DNA of 63,960 nt, the filler included, from Reticulomyxa filosa (Eukaryota; Protista; Foraminifera), in NCBI GenBank assembly GCA_000512085.1. It is 19 parts of 19 records of this genome, joined end to end, with 100 filler letters (N's around TTAATTAATTAA, not from the genome) between each part and the next. Parts side by side here need not be neighbours in the genome. Positions count along the whole stretch, not along the records: positions 25,142 to 32,768 come from ASPP01011185.1; 18 more parts are not named here. The stretch is one strand, 5' to 3'. The notes under the pieces were generated by a model. That model did not search any database. It worked only from the letters and a program-made list of their open reading frames with translations, and was not told where the DNA came from. The position numbers were made by a program, and so were the translations under genes. The first letter of the stretch is position 1, and every line of letters begins with the position of its first letter. This document shows, piece by piece, positions 4,009 through 33,508 of the stretch.

Positions 4009-4992
4009 TTTCGGCAATCCGGAATTGACAGTGCAAATGTTTTGGAAATAATTAGAAAGATTCGGAAAAATGAAGGCATTCTTGGATTTTGGCGGGGCAA
4101 TTGGTTGAACATTATGCGCGCAAGCATCCAAAAAGGATCTTTGTTTGCGTTGAACGACTTTGGTCAAAAGCAGTTCCATCAATCGAATCTTTCATTGAGC
4201 ACGGGAAGCATTAATTTCATTAGCGGCTCTCTTGCAGGTGTCATTAGCACATTTACCACACATCCTTTGGACATAGTAAAGACAGCCAATCAAGCCATTG
4301 TTCATTCCACATCGCAGGCCCGTTTTCAAGCAATCCCGATTTGGTACGGATTAACTCTCAGCAAAGTTTCGTGTGCGTGTTTTCTGTGTAATTTGTGTAC
4401 AATATCTATTACATTACATAACGTTGTGCATCACATATACATATAAATTTATACATATACATACATATATGCGCGCATATGTTAAACAACACGTGCCATC
4501 TGTGCAAATGATTTCATGTTGTGATAAAAGGGGATATTTGGACCGTGGATCACATTGGTACCAACGCTTGCTGGGACTGCATTGTATTATGGGATAAAAT
4601 TCGCCGGCTTTGATTTGTACATGAACTATTTGAATAAACTCGCGCAGACTTTCGATCTTGAGTCGAAGACTGAGTCGGGTGTCTATCTTCAAGCCCAACG
4701 TGGCACTGCTGGAATGTTGGCGGGATTGAGTGGCAATTTCGTCTGCTTTCCGAACAATTGCGTTCGCAAATATTTGTCCACTACCAATGTCCTCTATGCT
4801 TTTCATCTCAGAACAGAGCCCCCGCTCAAGTACTTTGGCGCTGTTAAATATTTGTACAAAACATACGGTTTAAAACGTTTTTACAATGGCTTCGGCGTTA
4901 ATTTGTTGCGAAATGCACCCAACACTGGAATACAGTTTATGGTTTTTCTCTCGCTGAAAGATTACTATCAGGGCTATCAACTTAAAATCTAA
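4008..4992 (+). CDS. Mitochondrial carrier family (SLC25) protein, 5' partial
   Basis: EGILGFWRGN, carrier signature HPLDIVKT, YGLKRFYNGFGVNLLRNAP; one intron at about 4366-4530. Confidence 0.9.
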
Positions 4993-6090
4993 CATTATCA
5001 TACAAGCTATTTTTTTTTCTCCTTCATTCGCAAATTTACAATTATTACCAACACTTCATTCCCAACTGATGACGACCAATTTTTGAGCTTGTTTTGCTTT
5101 TTTCAACAGTCATGATAGTAATCGACTACCTTTTATGTTGTTATGATTTAAAAGCAAAAACTATGGTTCACAACCAATGTGTAAATTTGTTTCATTTTAA
5201 ATTTTCGGATTTTTCTGTTTTACTCGTTTTGAGATTTCTCTTAACAATTTTTTTCGGCAAGCACAAAGCAGATTATGTTTGCAATAATTAAATTTAATAC
5301 TAGGCACCATGCTGCACATATGTTCACCTTTATTCACCAGTCCAGAACTACGACCGTACGAACAGTGGGTACAGAAGCGTTTAAAGAAGCCAAAGTAAAA
5401 AAACCTGTCTTTCCAAATTTAAAATAAAATTAAAACAACTAGAAAAAAATGCCTAAAAGATTGGGCCAGTATCTTTCCGATCGCTGTCTAAAAAGTTGTC
5501 ACCGACGTAATACTAAGCAAGTCAAGTAAAGTTTTTATTGGACAATTTTTTTAAAAGAAGATTGTTTGGAGAAAAATAAACAACTATTTATAGAGAAAGC
5601 AAATTGAAAAAAGCATCAAAACACGCGAAAAAGTTCCAATAACAATCGTTGGGTTTCGTTGTCTCTTTTCTCGCCAGTAGCGTCAAGTTTGAGACCTATG
5701 CAGGCAGTACATGCTCTTGCATGTGAAAGATATGACCAACATCACCAAAATATGTTTGGGCTTGGTTGGTCCGATCGTCTTATTTTTGCTTCTATTCTTC
5801 TTCCGAATGATGGCAGCTTGTTTTTTGCGCCATGCAGATTTTTGTATGACATCGTTCCATACTATACTCGCAAATTTTTCGAAAATATACGAAATAACTT
5901 TTTTAAAATTTCGATGATGTTCTCGTTAGTTTTTTTTAATGTGATTACAGTCTTCATTCAGGTTATTTTTTTGTCCATTTTTTTTTTTTTNNNNNNNNNN
6001 NNNNNNNNNNNNNNNNNNNNNNNNNNNNNNNNNNTTAATTAATTAANNNNNNNNNNNNNNNNNNNNNNNNNNNNNNNNNNNNNNNNNNNN

Positions 6091-6147
6091 GAAAATATGG
6101 CGAAGACTCCGGATCGAGAAAATATGGCGAAGACCCCGGACCGAGAA
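6091..6147. repeat. 27-bp tandem repeat (2 copies, truncated at contig edge)
   Basis: gaaaatatggcgaagactccggatcga followed by gaaaatatggcgaagaccccggaccga; the + frame reads ENMAKTPDR twice. Confidence 0.75.
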
Positions 6148-7215
6148 GGGGTGGCAGAAATCGCAGATATGCGCGGTAACAATCGCATCCTTGTTTGCGT
6201 TACTGCTCAAAAAATTGCTCATGACAAAGAGTGAAAACATTTTGATGGAGACACATAATAATATCAATCTAGCAAGTGCACAGTGGTTGCTAAGGAAGCA
6301 ATTTACGTCTTCCGAATGTTTACTTTCCATTTTGGCATTAAAGTTTTCTTTCCTATGGCTCTCCCACTCTTCCTTTTGGATTCTGGTCATTTGATGGAAC
6401 TTCAAAGCATTTTTTTTTATTTCATGTCAACTTTTGCATCGGTGGAGAGTTTTTCCTTTTAACTCTTTTCAAATTTTTGTTTCGAAAGATGAACTCTGGT
6501 CTTGCAGTCTTTTACTCTCTTCTTACAAACACCATAAATAATGAAATGCCAATTTGCTCATATGAACCATTTACCTTCATTTTACTGAAGTAACTCATTT
6601 ATTTTGAACAATTGACGCATGTAGAAACAGTGAGCTACGACCAAGTGTAATACGAGGAATTTTGTTCCGAGAAATAAATTCAGTAACACGAAATAATTCA
6701 TGAAAGACAAACAATACAACGAAAACGAGAAAAGAGAAAGTGCTGTGAGAGTTTAGCCCACTGGGGCTCCAAGGTTCCTTGAGTTTTATGCTAGCTGTAT
6801 ATAGAGTAAGTCTATTATAACTCTCTTTTTTGTTTCCTTCGAGGTATTGTGATGGCGTAACTTTTGAATAAGCAGTTAAATTTTGAATATACATTTTCAC
6901 GCAATAACTTGCGTAAGTGGATAGTTACATATATTTCGATCAGATGCAGAAAATTGAATCAAATACATCACAAGTACTCGTGGCAATAAACAATGACAAC
7001 AAAAGAGAAACAAATTAAACATTCATTCGAAATTTTTCTGTTGAATTAAGTTTATTTTTCAAGAATAAAGACAAACACAAAATCAAAAACATCAAACAAA
7101 AATCAACAACAAAAAACAAAAAAAATTCTAAATTGAGCTTTATCTTAGTGTTTTTTATTTTTTGTTGAATTTCAGTATTATTTTTAAGGTTATTTATTTT
7201 GCAAAACGTGAAAAT

Positions 7216-8283
7216 CTAACAATGTTGTCTGAAATAATAGTAACCTCCATTGAAAGCAAAAGGACACATTAAAATAGCTAGAACAAACATGACAATAGCA
7301 GCAATTAAAAGGCCAGTGCCTTGTTTGGCCGGCTGAGATTCAGTAGTGTTGTGTCGATGATGAGAAAAATTGTAATCAGCAATAGGAGTGAAGTTCAAAC
7401 TCCATATTGTGCATTCTTCAAATTTGGAAGTTACATTGTTTGTACAAAACAGTTGTTGACCAACAGTAAGAGATTGTGTAACATTGCAAAGTTGCAAAGT
7501 ATTTCCAACGCATTTACGTGAGTTACCAAGACTTGTGGTGACATTCAGCGAATAAGAAAAAAGGGTTTTTTCACACATGCTGTTGTTGGCCCACTGCCGA
7601 TTTGTGTCATTCAACACTTGACATACATACTCATTCAAATAGACGCCTTTGCTCTCTGACGTTTGTCGGAAATGTAGAAATAGTAAATAACATATCACAC
7701 CAGCCAGTGTTACCGCCATACAAACAAGAAATAACCCCAGGCCTTTTTAATAATTTTTTTTTTTTTAATACGTATATTTTTTTATTTTTTAATTTTTTTT
7801 ATTTTTTTTTTGAAAAAAGAAAATACCTACTCTTCCAAGATTACTGGAAAAATTCTCCTCAGGTTCATTTTCCTTGTTATCATTCTTTTCTTGTTTATTG
7901 TCTTTTGGATTTTCAACATTATCATGGCCCCATGGCAATATTCCGCCGAAATGCACTCTTCGTGACGATTCTTGTCGTGGGGTTGGTACTTCTTCCAGTT
8001 TCGCTTCTTGGAACAAATGATCTATTATCTCCAACTTTTTTTGTACACTTGAGTGCATGGCAGAATTTGGACTCGGTGGATATGTTGGAGCTGGTGATAA
8101 CTCTCTTCCCAAACTCATACTTTGCATGCTGGTCAGTTCCGTCAAAGGTCCAATGCTTGGGATATCGTCTGTGCTCAGCTGCTTCGAGTTTTTCATCGCT
8201 TGTGTTGGATTCCCATCCTTGTTTTCCAACCCTGTTTTAGGGATGGTCAACGTACTGGCATCTGGCTTGCCGTTATTCATCAT
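7216..8283 (-). CDS. Two-TM membrane protein with a Cys-rich, N-glycosylation-rich loop (2 exons)
   Basis: ORFs 7789-8289 and 7216-7719 join through an A/T-rich intron (about 7745-7828). Disordered N-terminus, TM1 GLGLFLVCMAVTLAGVICYLLFL, loop with 6 Cys and many NxS/T sites, TM2 GLLIAAIVMFVLAILMCPF. Confidence 0.7.
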
Positions 8284-11200
8284 CGACACTATAGCATTTT
8301 ATACAACAACAAAAAAAGTTCTCTCTGTTCTTGAGTGTTCGTCTTGCTTATGTTACAATTGAGGAAAGGTCAACACTTATCAAATTATTAAGCAAAAAAG
8401 ACTGAAAGTAAAAAACAAGAAACTGGATTGAATTAAATTGTCTTCGAGTTTTTCATCTTACACACGCTCCTTTCATCATAATCTCGATTTTCATTAAATT
8501 AAAGAGTAATGAATAGATTATTCTCATCAACAAATCTATGGCATCAGCAACATGTGTGGCGATCTTCTCCACTAGCGTCTGTATGGACTTCTAGGAAGGA
8601 ATCAGATCAATAAAAAGTGATAATTGTCAATGAAAATAACGGAATTATTGGCGACGCAGCACGATCAAAAATGCGATCAGATAGACTCTGGCACCGTGCG
8701 TCTTTTATTTATGTGTTCAACTCAAAGTTTAATCTTAATCCAAACAAGCAAAAAATCAACAAAAAAGACGAAAATATTCCTTTTAAATCTTAATTTCAAA
8801 AAGGATCATACTGTTAATTAACGTGCATAAATCAAAAACAAAGAACTGCGCAAAAAGAATCCACCATGTCAAAAAAATCTACTGAAAGCTGTTTTGTGTT
8901 TTACAAAACAAAGATGTTTAATCGAAAATGTTTACTAATTTTAGCACTATCATAAAAGTAAAAAGAAGTTTTTATATTTAACATGAATTTCTCGCAAAGT
9001 TCCTTTGCAAAAAATTATGTGAAAAAAATTTGCTTTTGATGTTCAGACTTTACTTTCATCAATTCACATTCTGACATATTAGTCTTCATAACATCATTGC
9101 TTCCCGGGAAGCAGCAAACTAATGAATAAGGAATATACATTTAGTCGATTTGTTGAAATCGTTTTTCCGAAAGTTAGCACTTTCCTTCCACTTATTATAC
9201 TGCAACTGCTTCAATTCATATTTTGTAAATACTGAATTGAATAACATCTAGAAATATTATCAAACTAGACAACTTTAAGCTTTCATACAGCTTCTACGCA
9301 AAGAGGAAGATATACCAAATTGAAATTAAATTCTCCAACAACAGAACAAAAATTTTATACGTGTACAATCAAACAAAAAATTTTATGAAGCAAACTCTGG
9401 GACATTTGTATTCTNNNNNNNNNNNNNNNNNNNNNNNNNNNNNNNNNNNNNNNNNNNNTTAATTAATTAANNNNNNNNNNNNNNNNNNNNNNNNNNNNNN
9501 NNNNNNNNNNNNNNTTTTTTTTTTGCTCGGGTCTTTTTGTTCTTTCAAAAATCGGTCAATTTCTTTATTGTACTCGCATATACTTTGAAGTGAAATGTGA
9601 CTGTGGCTTTGCCAGACGTTCATTTGGGACTGTGTGTAAGGGTAGCCAAATAGAAATGTCGTTCCAACTGTGAGTTGGAAAATAAAAACTCTCATGTAAA
9701 AAAAATATTGGACAATATTAAAAACTTCTGGAGCTTTTGTACAGTTGTTTCTCTGTAATAACGTCATAAGCTAAATCTAAAAAAAATTAGAATGCCACAG
9801 ATGACAAAGAGCAATAATACCACACTAATTTTCATTTTAAAGAGCTTGTTCAACTGTTCATAGATTTAGAGCTCTTTTTTTAAAAAACTTTTTCTTAGTC
9901 TAGAACTTTTTTCCCTCTTTATCGTAAAAAAAAATATTGATAAGTTTTTTGGTAAAATATTTTGATAAAAATAAGTTATTTTGATGAATGTGGCCATTGA
10001 AATTTAAACTACAAACTTCTTTTTTTATGGCTATTGTGCTGTTGGATAGTTGTAAGGGCTCTTTTTCTTGGTGATGTTGGAGTTCTCTAGTGCTGGCGTT
10101 GGACGTTGACTATGCTTTTCAATATTTACTCCCTAATGGCGCGCATGTCATTTTCTTCAAAGTTGGCTGTTACAATTCCTCAATTAAAAACAAGGCCACT
10201 TCTCACCAGACCAACCACTATAACGTCAACAATTATATTAACAATTTCACAGGTGACCAGTCCGACTATCAAACAAAATATCGCGCCAACTATTGCACCA
10301 ACTCTAAAATCAATTACTAAAATACAAATCGCGATCATAAATATGGACAGTCAAATTTGTGGACACTTAACAGGATTTGCAAAAATAATGAATGGGGAGC
10401 ATTGGATTTCGTGGTCACCTTTCAGTTAATTTTTGTATCTTTTTTCAATTAAAAAAATAAATAACCAAGAAAAAGATTGATATAAGTATGAAAATTATTT
10501 TTTTAATTTATATAGACGTATACAAATATAAAATATAAATAGACATGGACATGGCATGTGCAAAATGTTGTGCTTAAATACTTGGCAAAGTCCAAAATGG
10601 TGACACAACAGCCAAGACAATGCGCACACTAATATTGAGTTATGGCTTGGGCGATTTCAATAGTCCTCAAATGGAGGACGATAAATGGCCGATCCATAAT
10701 GACGTCCGCGCCTGCAGCAACAAACAATAAGTAAGCAACTAAATTATGACACGACAAATTAGTATATATCAACAATTTACATGACATAAGTATATATATT
10801 TACACACTTTTTTTTTATATGTAGAATTATACACAAAAATAACGTATAAATTTGGTGATGTATATACACATTATTGAAAAAAAATATAGACAAAGCACCC
10901 ACGATGATCCAGTGACAACAAGAAGAAAAAGGGGTAGAAGTCAACCCCGTCTCCGAAAGGATTATGAAAGGTTTGTCCTATCTTTATAGTGTATATATAA
11001 ATATGTTAATGTGTTATGTGTTTTTGCACAGGAGTCCCCCCCGCCAGAAACAGTTACATGTATACCCAATTCACACAAAACAAAACATTGGGGTCGAAGG
11101 CCGTCCGGTGCGCAAAATAAGGAATAATGGTTTGTTATATTTTATATATGTTTATCTTTCTTTTGTTAAGATAGTGTGATTGTGTGTATATCATAAATAG

Positions 11201-25141: not shown

Positions 25142-25179
<38 letters not shown>

Positions 25180-27180
25180 CAATGTGTTTGAACGACCCAA
25201 TAATCCATCAATAACTCTAAAGACTGGACTTGTGATGAGCGATGCGAATAGAACGACTCGTGCGACGAGCAACGGCAGTGGTGGCTCCCCTGTGAGCGTC
25301 GCTTCGTCAGGCTTTACGTACAACATCCAGCAAGCGGAGCCGAGCTATCGACGCTACTTTGCCATGTGCAAGTCATTGGACGTGCCTTTATTTGTCGTCC
25401 TGTCCAAGTGCGACGACACCAAGTATCAGCATCGCATCCCCGAGTTGCTGTCGAGGCTGTCCGAAATCATCCGAAAAGAGACGGCTGGACAAATGAGGAC
25501 TCATCACGTTCTCACCCCAAACGAAAGTTGCACCGCTGCACGTGCCATGCAGGCAAATGAAGTTGTCCCCGTTTTTGTCTGCAGCTCTGTCACGGGCTAT
25601 GGTATTTATATACGTATATACATATACATATATGTACATGTATATGTATATGTATATGTATATATATATGTATGTACATATATTTATGTGTATAATATGA
25701 CACATTTGAATAAACTTATGTTATTCAATCCAATAGGTCTTGCTACTCTCAAGACGTTTTTGTTTTCATTATCAAGGGAACAGCATTGGAACAGTGCTAC
25801 ACACCAGGTAACTTCAAAACAATGTTTATTATTATTATTATTATTGTTTTACATAATCTTGTTTGGGATGACATAGCCTGCAGAGTTTGCGATCGATCAC
25901 ACAATCGAAGTCGCTGGCGTAGGTGTGATTGTCGGTGGAATAGTCCGCAAAGGTGCAATTCACTCGGGACAGACCTTGCTATTGGGACCCATGCCACTCT
26001 CCTCAGCCTCGCCTGCTTCCATCTCCGTGTCAGCGTCATCCTCAATGTCCCTGCCAATGCCAATGCCAATGCCAATACCAATATCAGCATCCAAAGAAGA
26101 GAAGGAACGAGATGACAATAGCAATGACAATGATAATAACAATGATAATAACAATGATAATAACAATGATAATGATGATGATGATGGTAATGGCAATGGA
26201 CATGACGGTGATGAGGACGAAGACGGTTATGAAAATAGATTCGAGCGCGTAACAGTGCAGTCCATTCACGTTCGTCGACGGCATTCGTTTGTTGCGTATG
26301 CGGGCCAATTAGCGACCTTCCATTTGACCGAGGTCAACAGCTTGCTGCAGGTGCGTCGGGGCATGGTACTGCTTGCCCCTTGCTTGCAGCCAAAGATTTG
26401 CTTTGCGTTTGAAGCCGAGTTAATCGTGCTTTACAACTGCCAAATCCATACCCACTCGCAACCCATCGTCCATATCGACAGCATTCGACAAGAGGCACAT
26501 ATCCTCAAATTGAAACCGAACACTTGCTTGCGCGGAGGTGAGCGTGGCATTGCCATGTTCGCTTTCCTTCATCGCTGCGAATATGTTCAGTGCGGACAAC
26601 GGGTCATTGTTCGCAATGCCGTTGATGTTGTCGCGGTTGGTCGAGTCACTAACATTATTCATTCGTTCAAACATCCCTTTTGTCATCCCAAGCTTTACAG
26701 AGATAAAAAAGTCAAATCTGCTTTTCATTCTAAAACGGTATTTTTATTTTTTTTTTATGTGTTCAAATTTTCTATAAACAATGCTTTGCATACATGCAAT
26801 ATGTATATACATATTTCGTCACACAGAGGAACACGCATGTTCAAAGTCCAAATGTAGCTTGCACACTCAAACCGTCCATTGGCAAGAATAAGCTGTCAAA
26901 GTCCTCTTTACCATTGAATTTCGGAAGTAGTGACGCTGATGATGAAAGCAGAGAACCGTCGGATGTTATTGCAAAACAAGACAGGACATTGTCCTTCCCT
27001 TCTCCCATGCTTTGCCCGAAGAAAAAAAAGATCGACAAGCTTTGCGGAGAAAAGAAAATCTCGTGCAAACAACTTGCCCAAGAAAAACCCGCTTCTACTG
27101 TTTTGAATATTTTGTCAGAAGATAGATACACCAACCATGATAGAACGCCCACCGTTGCCGCACTAGAGAAGCATCCTTGA
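25142..27180 (+). CDS. GTPBP1/GTPBP2-like translational GTPase (5' partial)
   Basis: LDVPLFVVLSKCD (G4), VVPVFVCSSVTGYG (G5), domain II IEVAGVGVIVGGIVRKG..GQTLLLGP and VQSIHVRR..AGQLATF, RRGMVLL, domain III FEAELIVL...PIVHIDSIRQEA. Confidence 0.85.
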
Positions 27181-27682
27181 ATGAAACAAATTTAAAACAA
27201 AAAAATAAATTAAAAAAAAAAGAGGTGTTTGAAAAATATCATACAAAATGTCGCCTTCAAAACAATTTGTGAGTGTTAGAGAGCGTTCACTACCATTTTT
27301 AAACAAAAATGATAATACATTGAACACAAATCTGGTAACACATGTGCCTTTGCTATGTTGATGATTTCTGTAACCAAAACTGGGTGTTCACATTGGTTGT
27401 GACAAACTGATTATGGCATCTCAAATCTCTAATTGCAGTGCACTTTTTGTAGTAATTTTTTGCCTAAAAACTCTATCAAATAAAACTATTTTTTTTTTTT
27501 TTTGCAATAAGTTGATGAGCTTTTTGTTTTTATTTGTAACAAGGATCCATCTACCCCACTTCAAACTTTATGACCATCAAACACTTATCCTGTTCAGCAA
27601 TAGTCAAATACAAGCATAGGAGTGTCCTCCTGAAACACACATAAACAAAAACAACCCAAATCAAAAAAAACAGACAATATGA

Positions 27683-30600
27683 CTACCAATGTAACCACAG
27701 CACGCCATTAAACGCCCCACCGCGTTGCTTCACCAGCAATTTTTGTTGATCATTTAAACCTTGGACGCCTTTCCAAAGGCTACCAACCATGGACAAGCCA
27801 CAGCTTTGAACACCACCTTGCCATTTGCACGTGCCCAATGATCTATCCCACAAACGGATACTTTTGTCGTCAGATGATGACAAAACCGAACATCCATCTC
27901 TGGAAATCTCGGCTGTTCGTACCGCAGCCGAATGGCCTTCAAATTTTTGTAATTCCCGTCCAGATGCAATATCCCAAATTCGTATGGTCTGATCACGAGA
28001 GCAAGAAATAATAAGTCGTTCATCTGCGGAAAACTTTACGCCTGTCACAAGATCCGTGTGTCCTTCTAATTTTTTCGCTTCTCGTCCTGAGGGGACATTC
28101 CACAATCTGATTGTTTTATCACAAGAGCAAGATACAATTGTACGATTATCGGATGAAAAGTGCACTTCGGTGACACCAGCTGTATGTCCCTCAAATTTTC
28201 GAATCTCTCGTCCTGACTCCACATCCCACATGCGAATCGTGGTGTCATAAGAACACGACACGACATTTCTTCCATCTGGTGAGAATTGCACCCCCAAAAC
28301 ACTGTCCGAATGTCCTTCGAATTTTTTAATTTCCGACGCCGTTTTTGTGTCCCAAATTCGAACTGTTTTATCTTCAGAGCCAGAGACAATATAGCGACCA
28401 TTCGAAGAAACTTGCGCCGCTGTAATGCCTCTGAAATGTCCTTCAAATCTTTGAATTTCCTTGCCTGATAGCAGACTCCATAATCGGATTGTCTTATCTT
28501 CAGAGGACGAAATAATAGTAAGACCATCGGTTGAAAACCCCACTGAGGTGACAGCAGCAGAATGTCCCTCAAGTGTTTGAAGCTCACGTCCCGAATGTAT
28601 GTCCCATATTCGAATTGTCTTATCACTTGAGCAAGATATAATACTGCGATTGTCGGGTAAAAAGCGGGCAGCAACAACGTTATCAACATGTCCATCTAAT
28701 CGTTGGTTCTCTCTTCCAGATACCACATCCCACAATCGAATCGTCTGATCTCCAGAGCATGACACTACACTACAGCCATCAGGTGAAAATTGCACACCAA
28801 ATACACTATCGGTATGGCCTTCCAATGTTTTTATTTCGCGTCCCGAAGAGACCTCCCACAATCGAATGGTTTTGTCCCATGAGCCAGATACAAGATTTTG
28901 ACCATCTGGAGAAAATTGCGCAACCGCAACAACATTGGAGTGTCCTTCCAATTTTCGCACTTCACGTCCAGACGCCACATCCCATATTCGAATTGTGCAA
29001 TCTGCAGAACATGAAACGACCTGTTGGCCATCGGGAGAAAATTGCGCCCCTGCCACAGGACCAGAATGACCCACTAGTCTTTGTAATTCCTTTCCTGATT
29101 TCACATCCCATAATCGTGTGGTTTCATCCCAAGATGAAGATACGAGAATTCTTCCGTCTGGTGAAAATTGAGCCCGCGTTGTACCTCTGGTATGTCCTTC
29201 CAGTTTTTGAATCTCCTGTCCTGATCTGATATCCCAAATTCGGACAGTGGAATCGTTTGAACAAGAAGCAATGATTTTTCCATCTGGCGAAAATTGGACT
29301 GCAGTTACAAGATGGTCATGTCCTTGAAACTTGTGCATTTCGCGACCCGATGCCACATCCCATAATCGAATCGTTTGATCATTCGAACACGAGACAATGG
29401 TACGACCATCTGATGAAAATTGCACATCATTGATGCCCCCTGTATGTCCCTCCAATTTTTGGATTTGCTTTGCAGAGGCTATATCCCACAATCGAATGGA
29501 GTCATCATAAGAGCTGGACACAATAGTAAGACCATCGGGCGAAAATTTGGCAGCTGTAATGATATGCGAATGACCTTTGAGATAAGCATACTCACCAAAC
29601 AAAACGTCAGACATTGAAGCGCTCTGAAAATTGACTTTATTTAGAAAAGCTTGCAGAAGAGATACATTTTGCAAATTGGCATTGCTGAAATCAGTGCCTT
29701 CAAGAAATGCGTGGTCGAGAATTGCATTGGAAATGTTTACATTACTCCAATCCTGATAAGCCAAGGACACCCTTGCTGCATTCAAAATCGTGGCTGCATT
29801 GGCCGCTGCAATGGCAACTGGATACGCTTTCGATGCTTCAATGATTCGTAACAAACGCGATTTAAAATTCACATACATGGGATTTTTGTCATGGACTCTT
29901 TCTGCAATGAAACGAATGATTCCATTTTCGTCATTGAGCAACTTCTTGTTTATTGAAAAATGCTGCACTTGTTGTGCAAACGTTTGCTGAAATACTTCGG
30001 CATTAATATCAACTTTGCTCCATTTCCAAGAGATAATCTCATTGATGACCTTATGTGCCGCAAAATATTCTTGACAAGATTTATGCAAGAATGTGTACTG
30101 ATTGGCGCCAATTCGTCGTAATGCATACTTAGTTAAGCCCTCACCTCTGAAATATTTTTCCCAAATGTCTCGCTTTTTTGCACTGTCATTAGTGCTGGCT
30201 CTTTCTTGTTCTTCGGCCATCTTATTCTCCATTTTCACATCCGGGTCCGGTAATGTGGTGGTCCAATCGGACTCATTTTCAGTTTCATTTTCCACTGCAA
30301 CTTGGTTGGATTGCAAAAACATTTCAAATGCTAGCCCTTGACAATATCTTTGGAAAGCAGATCTCATTTTATTTGTGTACGTTTGAATCCTTAATTCGGT
30401 TAATTTCTTGGAAATATGTTGGATGTGAAAATCTAACCACTGGTTGGTGAAAACCTCATATACTTGGGCCCTTGAAATGGTGCTTCCAACGGCATGCTGT
30501 TGAATCAAAGATGGCAACACGGTTAAGATCAGACGGAGGAGAAAAGGCTCCTCTACCATTTTGTACAAGTTTGGATACTTTTTTAATGTTTCGTGGTACT

Positions 30601-32720
30601 GTTGTGCATTCCAGTTATCTTTGGTTTTGTTGAATTGTTCTGTGTTTACAAATTTTTCAATGTAGGAATGCATTTGAGTATTTGAAAAAGGCCACAAATG
30701 CACCATTAATGTATTGCTATTTTGATTTGATCCCATTAAAGTGCGTTTGATATCTTCTTTGTTTAAGACATTACTTCGACAAGTAAGAATGACTTTTGCA
30801 TTCCATTGACCAAGTTGTAATCGATCATAAAAATACATTTCATGATTGTTGCTTTTGTTATAAGAATCAAAAACTTCATCAAATCCATCTAAAATAAAAA
30901 TGAATGGAATAGATTTTTGAATAATATCAATAATTTCTTTATTGATTTGTTTCATTTGCAATGCTTCAGAAATGATATCTATTTCATGAAGATGATTATA
31001 AAATTTGGGTAATGAAATATAAATAGGAATAAATGTACTGGAATGATTAGAATAATCTTTCCATAAAGTTTCTTCTAAATAACGACAAAATAAGCTTTTT
31101 CCTGAACCTGAATTTCCTTGTAATACCATGACTGATTTTTGATCAGTTTTATTTTCAACAAATTCTTTAACATATTGATAACAATCAAATCCATCATTTT
31201 TATTATCATTTTCTGCATATGGATAGTTATTAGCTTGTAAAGGAATATATAAATTTAATGCTTGTGATATTGCAGCATCTTCTTCAATTTCTTGTTTTTG
31301 TGATTCTTGTAATATTGTAGCTACTTCAAAACAAGTAGCAGGATTTTTATCACCAATAATATATTTTTTATAAAATTCAAATAAAATAACATAAATAGCT
31401 TTTCCTTTTATTTTCATTGGAATAAAAGTACAAAGTTGTTCATATACAAATGAAGCTAATTTTAAAGAAGGATCTATAATAATATTATTAATTATTTTTT
31501 CTTTTTCTTTTTCTTCTTTTTGTTCAATAATTTTTGTTTTTAATTGAGGTGGATATAATATTCCAATATCTAAATGAGATTGATAACGTTTTGTAATTTT
31601 TATAATTTCTTTTTCTTCAATCCATTCACAAATAATATCATTAATTTTAGTTAAAGTTTCATCACATGCTTGTTTCAATTCTTCTTCTGCTTTATTAGGT
31701 TTCCAAGATCTTATAAGTTCATAAAATAAATGACTTAATTTTGGATTTTCAATGTTTGAATAACCTTGTAAAGTGGTAAAATTTTTTAATGTTGCTTGCA
31801 TTTCTACATATACATCATATTTTGGAACATATAATTTAATATTATGAAATCGATGATGTGTTTTTGATTGTTTTTCAAAAAAATCTTTATCTTCAGATAC
31901 AATTAAATTAAATTCTTCTGCTTTTTTCATTACTGCAACTGCTGTTTGTAATTTAGTTGGATTATCACATAAAATAGTAAATCTTCCAATATCAAATGCT
32001 TGATTAAAATCACCACCATAATCTGCTTGAATTTTTTCTAATAATCGAACATTATCTTTTAAATTTGGTGGTTTCACAACTGTAATTTCATATTTCTCTA
32101 ATTTTGTTATCAAATTTATTATTTCATTACTGTTCATTGCATTTTCACTTCGAATTCTTAAATCTTCCAAACTTATTGCATGTTGTCTAATTTTTTTAGC
32201 TTTTAATTCATATTTTGTATTTGCTTTAATTGTATATAAACATTGATAATGATTATCTTCAACTGGTATAGATTCATCATTAGCTCGAATTGAATGCTCT
32301 GAATTGAAAAACATTACTTTTACAATTGATGAAACTGTTTGTTTTCTACAATCTGGACAATTGTAATATCCTTTTCCTAAATCCAATGATAGCGTTTCAA
32401 AACCAATATTTACCCATACTGCTAACATTGCTTTTGCAGCCAAGCAATCTCCATTCGAACAATATCCTTGCAAATTTATCCCTGTTTTGATATCTCCAAT
32501 CTGCGCTTTTTCTTCTTCTTTTTGCAAACTCGTTGCTTTTTGCAATGGATTCTTTGTTATGTTTTCAATTGCTTCCTTTTTATTTTTATTTTTATGTTTA
32601 TTATTTCATTTTTATTTTATTTATGAAACAAACAAACAAAAAAAAAATCAAAACTGATACAAAATGATTCTGTGCCTCTTCTGTTTTGTGTTCAACTTGT
32701 GATGGTTGATCTTCAATCTT
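27683..32720 (-). CDS. NLR-like STAND protein: Zn-binding module + RelA/SpoT-like nucleotidyltransferase + NACHT + pentapeptide repeats + 14 WD40 repeats (5' partial)
   Basis: 1620-aa uninterrupted ORF plus an upstream exon (about 32660-32720) beyond an intron. Walker A GNSGSGKS (~31093-31118), Walker B FIFILDGFDE (~30875-30905), KVILTCRS, PFLL, winged-helix FLHKSCQEYFAA (~30057-30095). Pentapeptide AILDH-AFLEG-TDFSN-ANLQN (~29610-29730). Fourteen 42-aa GH...WD repeats (~27840-29585). Confidence 0.93.
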
Positions 32721-33508
32721 TTTTTTTTTTGCAGCATTCAATGTGTATGTGTATACGTAAAAAAAAAANNNNNNNNNNNNNNNNNNNNNNNNNNNNNNNN
32801 NNNNNNNNNNNNTTAATTAATTAANNNNNNNNNNNNNNNNNNNNNNNNNNNNNNNNNNNNNNNNNNNNTCAGAGGCGATACTTGTTACAATAGGCATGCC
32901 CACTTTGCTATTCTCGTTCATATTTAAGTCGATCTCCATATCCAAGTGCATTGGGTTAACGATAAAGTTCGTATTATCTGCATTGTAGCCAGTTTTACTT
33001 TGGATCATCGACTGCAACAACTTTTCTTCGGTCTCCACTCTTTCCAATTCACTCACTCGTGCAGCAACTCATTCAATGCCCTTTCTTTAACTTTCAAGTC
33101 TCACAATAGTGTTCGAGCTTGATCTGTTGTCTCATTTTATATGTTTTTAGAAATTCTTCTTGTGACAAATGACGAGCATATCGTCTTGACGCATATTCCA
33201 AAGCTAGTTTTTCCATTTTGGGAAAAAAAATACCCTTTAAAGAGTTTTGCTTTTTCACACGTGAACTCTTTCTTTTTTTTTGAAGATGTTAATGTTATAT
33301 AAGTTAATAAAAAGAGAAGAAAATAGAATAGTTTCAAAAACGGGATTTTGCTAGTACATCCTGAGAAATTATATGTTTTGTATTGAGATTTTTTTTTTTT
33401 TTGATAAGAAAGATTGTGAAGATAGTTGAAAGAGTGAGAATTACAATAATGAGGTGGCAAGGAGTATTCAACCAAACTATTACTTTTGTTACTCACTTCT
33501 CAATTATC

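Follow-up and report, generated by a model that had tools for sequence, protein, structure and literature searches.

In fungi, NOD-like receptors (NLRs) with a RelA_SpoT domain N-terminal to NACHT and WD40 were listed as one of 12 annotation classes, for example in Gaeumannomyces graminis, and it was suggested by the same authors that these receptors manipulate bacterial ppGpp signalling (Dyrka et al. 2014, PMC4986451). In later surveys RelA_SpoT is treated as a canonical but rare domain of fungal NLRs (PMC12258605, PMC9815663), and for the Sordariales a number of 17 such NLRs can be derived from the '14 - 82%' given in one of them (PMC12258605). In the literature we found no experimental work on RelA_SpoT NLRs and no paper in which Reticulomyxa is mentioned together with NACHT. 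The solved enzyme that will be seen to be nearest to the domain described here is Tas1, a type VI secretion system (T6SS) toxin of Pseudomonas aeruginosa (6ox6), which produces (p)ppApp and depletes ATP (PMC8118318). Here we analyse a gene of comparable domain order from the foraminifer Reticulomyxa filosa, contained in a stretch of 63,960 nucleotides, filler included, that was joined from 19 parts of the assembly GCA_000512085.1 and is called the window below. The gene is an uninterrupted, intron-free open reading frame (ORF) of 1620 codons and a stop on the minus strand (27683-32545), lying in the piece 25142-32768.

Based on its sequence, R. filosa carries about sixty copies of an NLR-like protein with an intact effector domain of the RelA/SpoT-homologue (RSH) type. 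We propose, with a probability that we put at roughly 0.6, that these proteins form a family of at least 57 NLR-like members of the signal transduction ATPases with numerous domains (STAND), in which an intact Tas1-like RSH pyrophosphokinase serves as the effector and is triggered by a ligand. The original prediction had placed a RelA/SpoT-type nucleotidyltransferase at 31680-32100, that is, at aa 149-289, in front of the NACHT domain of a protist protein. The residues that it quoted are indeed present there, the ORF reading ...NLKDNVRLLEKIQADYGGDFNQAFDIGRFTIL...EDKDFFEKQSKTHHRFHNIKL...YVEMQATL... across aa 162-253, and the host is a rhizarian protist.

The synthetase-type domain, as delimited by PF04607, profile searches, hhalign, Foldseek and VIA-align, spans aa 105-300 (31646-32233, minus strand, as for all features of the ORF given below), and the elements of an RSH active site follow one another within it. 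The first is the basic helix LKDNVRLLEKI (32030-32062), the presumed site for the ATP phosphates, where K163, R167 and K171 have the same K-x3-R-x3-K spacing as IKSRERAMQKI of Tas1 and are 93-98% conserved. It is followed by the strand FDIGRFTIL (31970-31996), which aligns to DIAGVR of RelP and to DLARNTI of Tas1 and holds the presumed catalytic D185 together with R188. The stretch EDKDFFEKQSKTHHRFHNIKL (31832-31894) is the counterpart of KDYI...GYRSLH in the acceptor-binding region, with D219 and F223 (KDFF) aligned to KDYI, and R232 and H234 (HHRFHN) aligned to GYRSLH. In YVEMQATL (31787-31810), the counterpart of the catalytic strand E-I-Q-I-R-T, E248 and Q250 (VEMQ) align to VEIQ of RelQ (VEIQIRT), and further on H272 and Y275 (LSHLFYE) correspond to the H..Y motif. 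Across 59 paralogue copies, conservation is 100% for D185, D219 and F223, 98% for K163, R188, R232, H234 and E248, and 97% for Q250. Taken by element, the residues of the basic helix, the Asp, the KD-aromatic motif and the E-x-Q motif are 92-100% conserved, with the mean column identity being 78%. The metal-binding Asp and the Glu-x-Gln that had been called intact in the one protein are thus kept throughout the family.

It is noted that the assignment to the RSH type does not depend on motifs read by eye. The isolated 196-aa domain of the window protein matches PF04607 with E 5.2e-4 and 20.7 bits, residues 59-146 lying on profile positions 4-88 of 113; the gathering score of the family, 27 bits, is exceeded by the paralogue P0001 with 30.2 bits. 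When the longer N-terminal piece of 450 aa was used, the Pfam scan reported nothing and phmmer against the PDB returned only PCNA noise, at E about 1. In a mixed alignment of R. filosa and bacterial sequences (A1), 27 of the 33 aligned sequences match PF04607 at E 0.1 or better. The distant bacterial proteins, which were found by exhaustive HMMER search, are 22-36% identical, come in part from Myxococcota metagenome-assembled genomes (MAGs), are in part named RelA/SpoT domain-containing, and each match PF04607 at 23-27 bits. A profile made from R. filosa sequences only (A2) aligns by hhalign to one made from bacterial sequences only (A4) with a probability of 98.9% and E 1.1e-17 over 161 columns. 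Against the PDB, the mixed profile finds Tas1 (E 2.5e-11), followed by RelP (3.2e-5) and RelQ (about 0.01); the bacterial profile finds Tas1 at E 4.5e-18 and RelP at 5.2e-10; and for the R. filosa profile Tas1 is the sole match, at E 1.3e-3.

The predicted structure leads to the same family. With the AlphaFold2 model of the domain (mean predicted local distance difference test score, pLDDT, 83; predicted TM-score 0.74), Foldseek gives nothing but RSH synthetases among its 50 best matches, Tas1 leading at E 1.6e-7. In VIA-align the model gives Z 14.0 with RelP, 13.9 with RelQ, 13.6 with Rel, 12.4 with Tas1 and 12.1 with CapRel (157 residues), and over all RSH entries Z is 8.6-14.0, as against at most 8.6 for other nucleotidyltransferases of the Pol-beta type (RsfS, Cid1, Pol mu). 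The domain of aa 105-300 is thus predicted to have the RSH synthetase fold and to stand apart from the other Pol-beta-type nucleotidyltransferases. Four independent lines, namely Pfam, transitive homology, sequence matches to solved structures and the fold, lead to a RelA/SpoT-type domain. Because the PF04607 match, the profile matches to Tas1, RelP and RelQ and the predicted fold agree with one another, the resemblance goes beyond a chance likeness of motifs. Moreover, Tas1 as the nearest solved relative, together with the K-x3-R-x3-K and D-L/I-A/G-R motifs, points to membership in a Tas1-like subgroup.

The family is large and its members share the same enzymatic head. A search with the N-terminal 450 aa gives at least 57 proteins, all named Reticulomyxa filosa and 60-72% identical, most of which continue as NACHT-WD40, and the exhaustive HMMER search gives 90 cluster representatives that are mostly fragments of the same family. 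In an RSH-domain tree, which is unrooted and comes from a quick search, the R. filosa copies form one clade on a long branch (SH-aLRT 100). In the exhaustive phmmer search there was no long NLR-type match over the RSH region, and those distant matches whose source was looked up are bacterial or metagenomic. Among 35 full-length paralogues the median identity to the window protein is 77.8% for the RSH domain, as compared with 59% for the NACHT domain, 59% for the pentapeptide repeats, 58% for the N-terminal Cys4 domain described below, 56% for the linker, 53% for the helical region and 46% for the WD40 repeats. The RSH domain is the region under the strongest sequence constraint in the protein. 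A conserved enzymatic head with a fast-diverging tail of repeats is the pattern that is expected of a receptor family sharing one effector.

That the RSH domain occupies the position of an effector, as the original prediction had it, is borne out by the relatives of the part that follows. The NACHT NTPase (aa 472-634, 30644-31132; PF05729, E 2.3e-10) has an intact Walker A motif GNSGSGKS (aa 477-484, 31094-31117) and an intact Walker B motif FILDGFDE (aa 550-557, 30875-30898), and is followed by a helical region (aa 635-925, 29771-30643) that homology searches show to be a chassis common to bacterial NACHT-pentapeptide-WD40 proteins. For the NACHT-helical chassis (aa 455-925) the nearest non-foraminiferal relatives are from bacterial MAGs (Myxococcota, with 32% identity, and Gammaproteobacteria) and from Mycoavidus, a fungal endosymbiont, with a few eukaryotes (Hexamita, Linnemannia) also among them; the relatives are mostly 26-32% identical over the full 471 aa. 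Pentapeptide and WD40 repeats are present in most of the bacterial chassis relatives as well, and neither an RSH nor a Cys4 domain was found in these. In three relatives of the Gammaproteobacteria type, a PARP catalytic domain ends about 100 residues before the P-loop; in another relative there is a weak lipase match at the effector position, and others have no assigned domain there. Since PARP, a possible lipase or other domains stand before the same NACHT chassis, the slot takes exchangeable enzymatic domains, as in other NLR-like families. The protein thus has the features of an NLR-like STAND protein of the NACHT clade: intact Walker A and B motifs, C-terminal repeats that diverge faster and an exchangeable N-terminal domain. 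The three bacterial MAG proteins with PARP just before the P-loop (P0260, P0261 and P0264, 2384-2510 aa, NACHT-pentapeptide-WD40), one of which (P0264) also has a weak OTU match, give the impression of an NLR-like family of bacteria that uses an ADP-ribosyltransferase as effector.

Among the relatives detected, those nearest to the RSH domain are bacterial, and so are those nearest to the NACHT chassis. For the RSH domain these relatives, judged by their gene neighbourhoods, are in toxin-type contexts with T6SS or immunity genes, like Tas1. In the protein P0126, DUF4781 is at the N terminus and the RSH domain at the C terminus, its gene being followed by several small ORFs, with PAAR and VgrG genes a few kb away; the DUF4781-RSH protein in toxin-type context is at 6001-9330 of locus L001 and at 4101-7430 of locus L002. 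In Shewanella a gene for a 261-aa RSH protein has a SUKH_5/SMI1_KNR4 gene after it (L003, 4001-5284). From established work on polymorphic toxins, the SUKH_5/SMI1_KNR4 family consists of immunity proteins. One further RSH relative bears the name RHS repeat-associated protein. Among the relatives there are also polyvalent bacterial proteins: in P0138 (397 aa) an ADP-ribosyltransferase (ART-PolyVal and exotoxin A-like matches) comes after the RSH domain, and P0127 (3127 aa) has two nearly identical RSH domains together with a calpain-type protease.

We infer enzymatic activity, its product and an immune role for the family along the following pathway. The WD40 propellers would bind a non-self or altered-self ligand, upon which the NACHT module would exchange nucleotide and oligomerise. 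The RSH domains would then be released or assembled, so that an acceptor would receive, on its 3'-OH, the beta-gamma pyrophosphate of ATP. As the acceptor we favour adenine nucleotides, by analogy with Tas1, which would yield (p)ppApp with rapid depletion of ATP; we hold this choice tentatively, as one possibility with a fair share of doubt. Arrest or death of the affected cytoplasm would follow from the loss of ATP, by analogy with TIR effectors that deplete NAD. R. filosa is a syncytial, network-forming and fusing foraminifer, and it is therefore plausible that the response would serve to shut down invaded or fused cytoplasm locally, much as heterokaryon incompatibility does in fungi. The full combination, in which an NLR-type receptor has a Tas1-type (p)ppApp output that brings local death within the syncytium, with the effector recruited from an interbacterial toxin and controlled by the Cys4 domain, is speculative, and we regard it as rather doubtful as a whole. 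If true, a eukaryotic enzyme would for the first time be seen to make (p)ppApp, and the RSH class of NLR effectors would receive its first assigned function.

Several points weigh against the proposal of a ligand-triggered, Tas1-like RSH effector. The domain of the window protein is under the gathering score of PF04607 (20.7 vs 27 bits). The acceptor stretch HHRFHN is unlike both GYRSLH of the small alarmone synthetases and GYSGVN of Tas1, so that the substrate cannot be read off the sequence. With no in-frame ATG before M39, this copy could be a pseudogene. An effector that depletes ATP, present in about 60 copies, would need tight auto-inhibition. The prediction of a two-copy complex of the RSH domain, which we list here with the same points, has a score of 0.00 and speaks neither for nor against self-association.

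Among the alternatives, the one that survives best is that the RSH enzyme is active and makes (p)ppGpp, either as a eukaryotic second messenger or aimed at bacteria that are eaten or harboured, as in the manipulation of bacterial signalling proposed by Dyrka et al. for the fungal NLRs (PMC4986451). In its predicted fold the domain is no less close to RelP, RelQ and Rel than to Tas1, and R232 retains the Arg found in GYR of the canonical (p)ppGpp synthetases, where Tas1 has Ser. By contrast, Tas1 is the best match of the mixed and the bacterial profiles and the only one that the R. filosa profile finds in the PDB, the K-x3-R-x3-K helix and the D-x-G/A-R strand are patterned as in Tas1, and a cytosolic NLR has no obvious way of getting the nucleotide into bacteria, so that we consider (p)ppGpp an unlikely product. 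On this point the alarmone-type output that had been predicted needs to be restated: the RSH family is as predicted, but its nearest solved relative here is a (p)ppApp-making toxin and not a classical (p)ppGpp synthetase.

It may also be supposed that the domain is a silent scaffold or a nucleotide-binding regulatory module, with the Cys4 domain, the linker or some other part giving the output, or that this copy is a decaying pseudogene. The sub-threshold Pfam score, the divergent acceptor loop and the lack of an in-frame start before M39 speak for this. Against it, the catalytic residues are kept at 97-100% in the 59 copies, as compared with the column average of 78%, no other part of the protein is as conserved as the RSH domain and the frame of 1620 codons is uninterrupted; we think this quite improbable. 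Finally, it is very unlikely that the domain adds pyrophosphate to tRNA at its 3'-CCA end in the manner of the toxic small alarmone synthetases CapRel, FaRel2 and PhRel2, so that translation would be stopped and ATP not depleted. The model does match CapRel strongly (Z 12.1, 157 residues), a protein that combines a sensor and an RSH toxin in one fusion, but there is no CapRel-type profile match in the PDB searches, the RSH domain is not notably basic (31 K+R vs 28 D+E) and the nearest bacterial relatives resemble secreted toxins of the Tas1 type.

Returning to the proposed Tas1-like effector, the module to which it belongs has two further parts. A beta-rich domain with four conserved cysteines (C29, C34, C63 and C66), called Cys4 here, is at aa 17-104 (32234-32497), as delimited by the paralogue alignment and predicted by AlphaFold with pLDDT 79, and it stands before every RSH domain of the R. 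filosa family. A linker of 170 aa (31136-31645), for which no family match was found, leads from the RSH domain to the NACHT domain. The Cys4 domain, the RSH domain and the linker always co-occur in the family, and in one paralogue (P0001, R. filosa RFI_08856) the whole module is present twice in tandem (aa 19-403 and 389-849) with a single NACHT domain after it. The Cys4 domain corresponds to no named Pfam family, a PDB search by sequence gave only CPxC knuckle noise, and against solved structures its model had no Foldseek match (best E about 1) and a VIA-align Z of 2.9 at best. In the ESM-Atlas there are look-alikes with scores of 0.94 and 0.91 by features and, by shape, a TM by query of 0.56-0.62 over 79-91 residues; these are unnamed eukaryotic clusters (rotifers, Mucoromycota), in which the domain adjoins ubiquitin, RING or ADP-ribosyltransferase domains.

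Downstream of the chassis, pentapeptide repeats are at about aa 926-985 (29591-29770; PF00805, E 8.5e-9, with a HetL-type match), and 14 WD40 repeats of 42 aa are at aa 989-1572 (27830-29581; PF00400, E 5e-163 in 14 stretches). The WD40 repeats, which are 52% alike on average and enough in number for two seven-bladed propellers, are the presumed sensor. Tandem Repeats Finder gave no DNA-level repeats in the WD40 region, and therefore the repeats are not of the near-identical kind that is known from some fungal NLRs.

As to the 5' end of the gene, the frame is open upstream to a TGA at 32606-32608, the first in-frame ATG is that of M39, and 32768 is the last position of the piece. The true 5' end may thus be in an upstream exon or past the edge of the piece. 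The gene models of the paralogues begin 2-590 aa upstream of the shared module, and in these N-terminal extensions (up to 590 aa) no Pfam domains were found. It may be that a first exon is missing or that this copy has no start. An upstream exon beginning at the ATG at 32736 was rejected as a gene model, the ATG being in another frame and having an A12 run after it.

The base composition changes along the ORF (27686-32545). The G+C content at third codon positions (GC3) amounts to 0.02-0.06 over the RSH domain and the linker, 0.19 in the NACHT domain and 0.34-0.48 in the helical region, the WD40 repeats and the tail, and the total G+C content climbs from 0.20 to 0.45 with a step near aa 635 (about 30640). 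At two paralogue loci the total G+C content is flatter, 0.26-0.34 at L004 and 0.27-0.42 at L005. Gene conversion or a recombination breakpoint are conceivable causes of the step. Bacterial contamination of the assembly was rejected as an explanation for the locus, in view of the GC3 of 2-19% in the 5' half, a neighbouring gene of eukaryotic type with microsatellites and the at least 57 paralogues on R. filosa contigs. This neighbour, on the plus strand at 25184-26857 and cut by the left edge of the piece, has a weak match of EF-Tu-type GTP binding (PF00009, E 7e-4), is broken up by TA-rich microsatellites and an Asn/Asp-rich repeat, and is probably a GTPase gene with introns.

Taken together, what the original prediction had observed is confirmed and its interpretation is supported: every testable element held, and two corrections are needed. 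One is the identification of Tas1 as the nearest solved relative, as discussed above. The other concerns precedent. The statement that no eukaryotic NLR with such an output has been characterised stands, but the architecture has been catalogued in fungi since 2014 (PMC4986451).

The implications of the proposal can be seen from other immune systems. NLR effectors that consume a metabolite recur in the immunity of bacteria, plants and animals, for example the TIR and SIR2 domains that consume NAD. An RSH effector that consumes ATP, if true, would be a second currency beside NAD. The R. filosa family is suited to testing this, as it offers about 60 natural variants, a strongly conserved core, a clear link to Tas1, the chemistry of which is known, and a compact domain of about 200 aa that lends itself to direct assay. 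In addition, it documents an expansion of NLR-like receptors in Rhizaria, a supergroup that is almost absent from the literature on innate immunity.

In comparison with known systems, Tas1 shares with the R. filosa domain the K-x3-R-x3-K helix, the D-L/I-A/G-R strand, the E-x-Q strand and the predicted fold, whereas it is a secreted bacterial toxin with an immunity protein and has the acceptor loop GYSGVN in place of HHRFHN, and it is a eukaryotic gene that joins the R. filosa domain to NACHT-WD40. RelQ, RelP and the synthetase domain of long Rel, RelA and SpoT are alike in fold (Z 13.6-14.0), in the catalytic Asp and in Glu-x-Gln, but are only 12-17% identical, and the R. filosa domain comes without hydrolase or ribosome-binding domains. 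The anti-phage protein CapRel (7ztb, Z 12.1) is a toxic RSH enzyme held inactive within one polypeptide until its sensor binds a foreign protein, which is also how the R. filosa proteins may be supposed to work; it differs in that its sensor is a small C-terminal pseudo-zinc-finger, in that it has no STAND NTPase and in that tRNA is its target. The bacterial NACHT-pentapeptide-WD40 proteins (Gammaproteobacteria and Myxococcota MAGs; Mycoavidus) have the same chassis, the same kind of C-terminal repeats and an enzymatic domain just before the P-loop, but the effector is PARP/ADP-ribosyltransferase or unassigned, and they have neither the RSH nor the Cys4 domain.

The closest in overall layout are the fungal RelA_SpoT-NACHT-WD40 receptors, which, compared by their published descriptions, likewise have the order RSH-NACHT-WD40 in eukaryotic proteins of expanded and variable families. 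By contrast with these, the present family is from a rhizarian foraminifer, its RSH domain stays below the threshold of PF04607 and falls together with bacterial toxin domains of the Tas1-like kind, an extra Cys4 domain stands in front and pentapeptide repeats are inserted between NACHT and WD40, and the domain is here the dominant effector, in at least 57 copies, while it is rare in fungi. Thus, the RelA_SpoT-NACHT-WD40 order was already known from fungi, and what is new here is the supergroup, the Tas1-like RSH domain, the Cys4 domain, the pentapeptide repeats and the large expansion with a shared effector.

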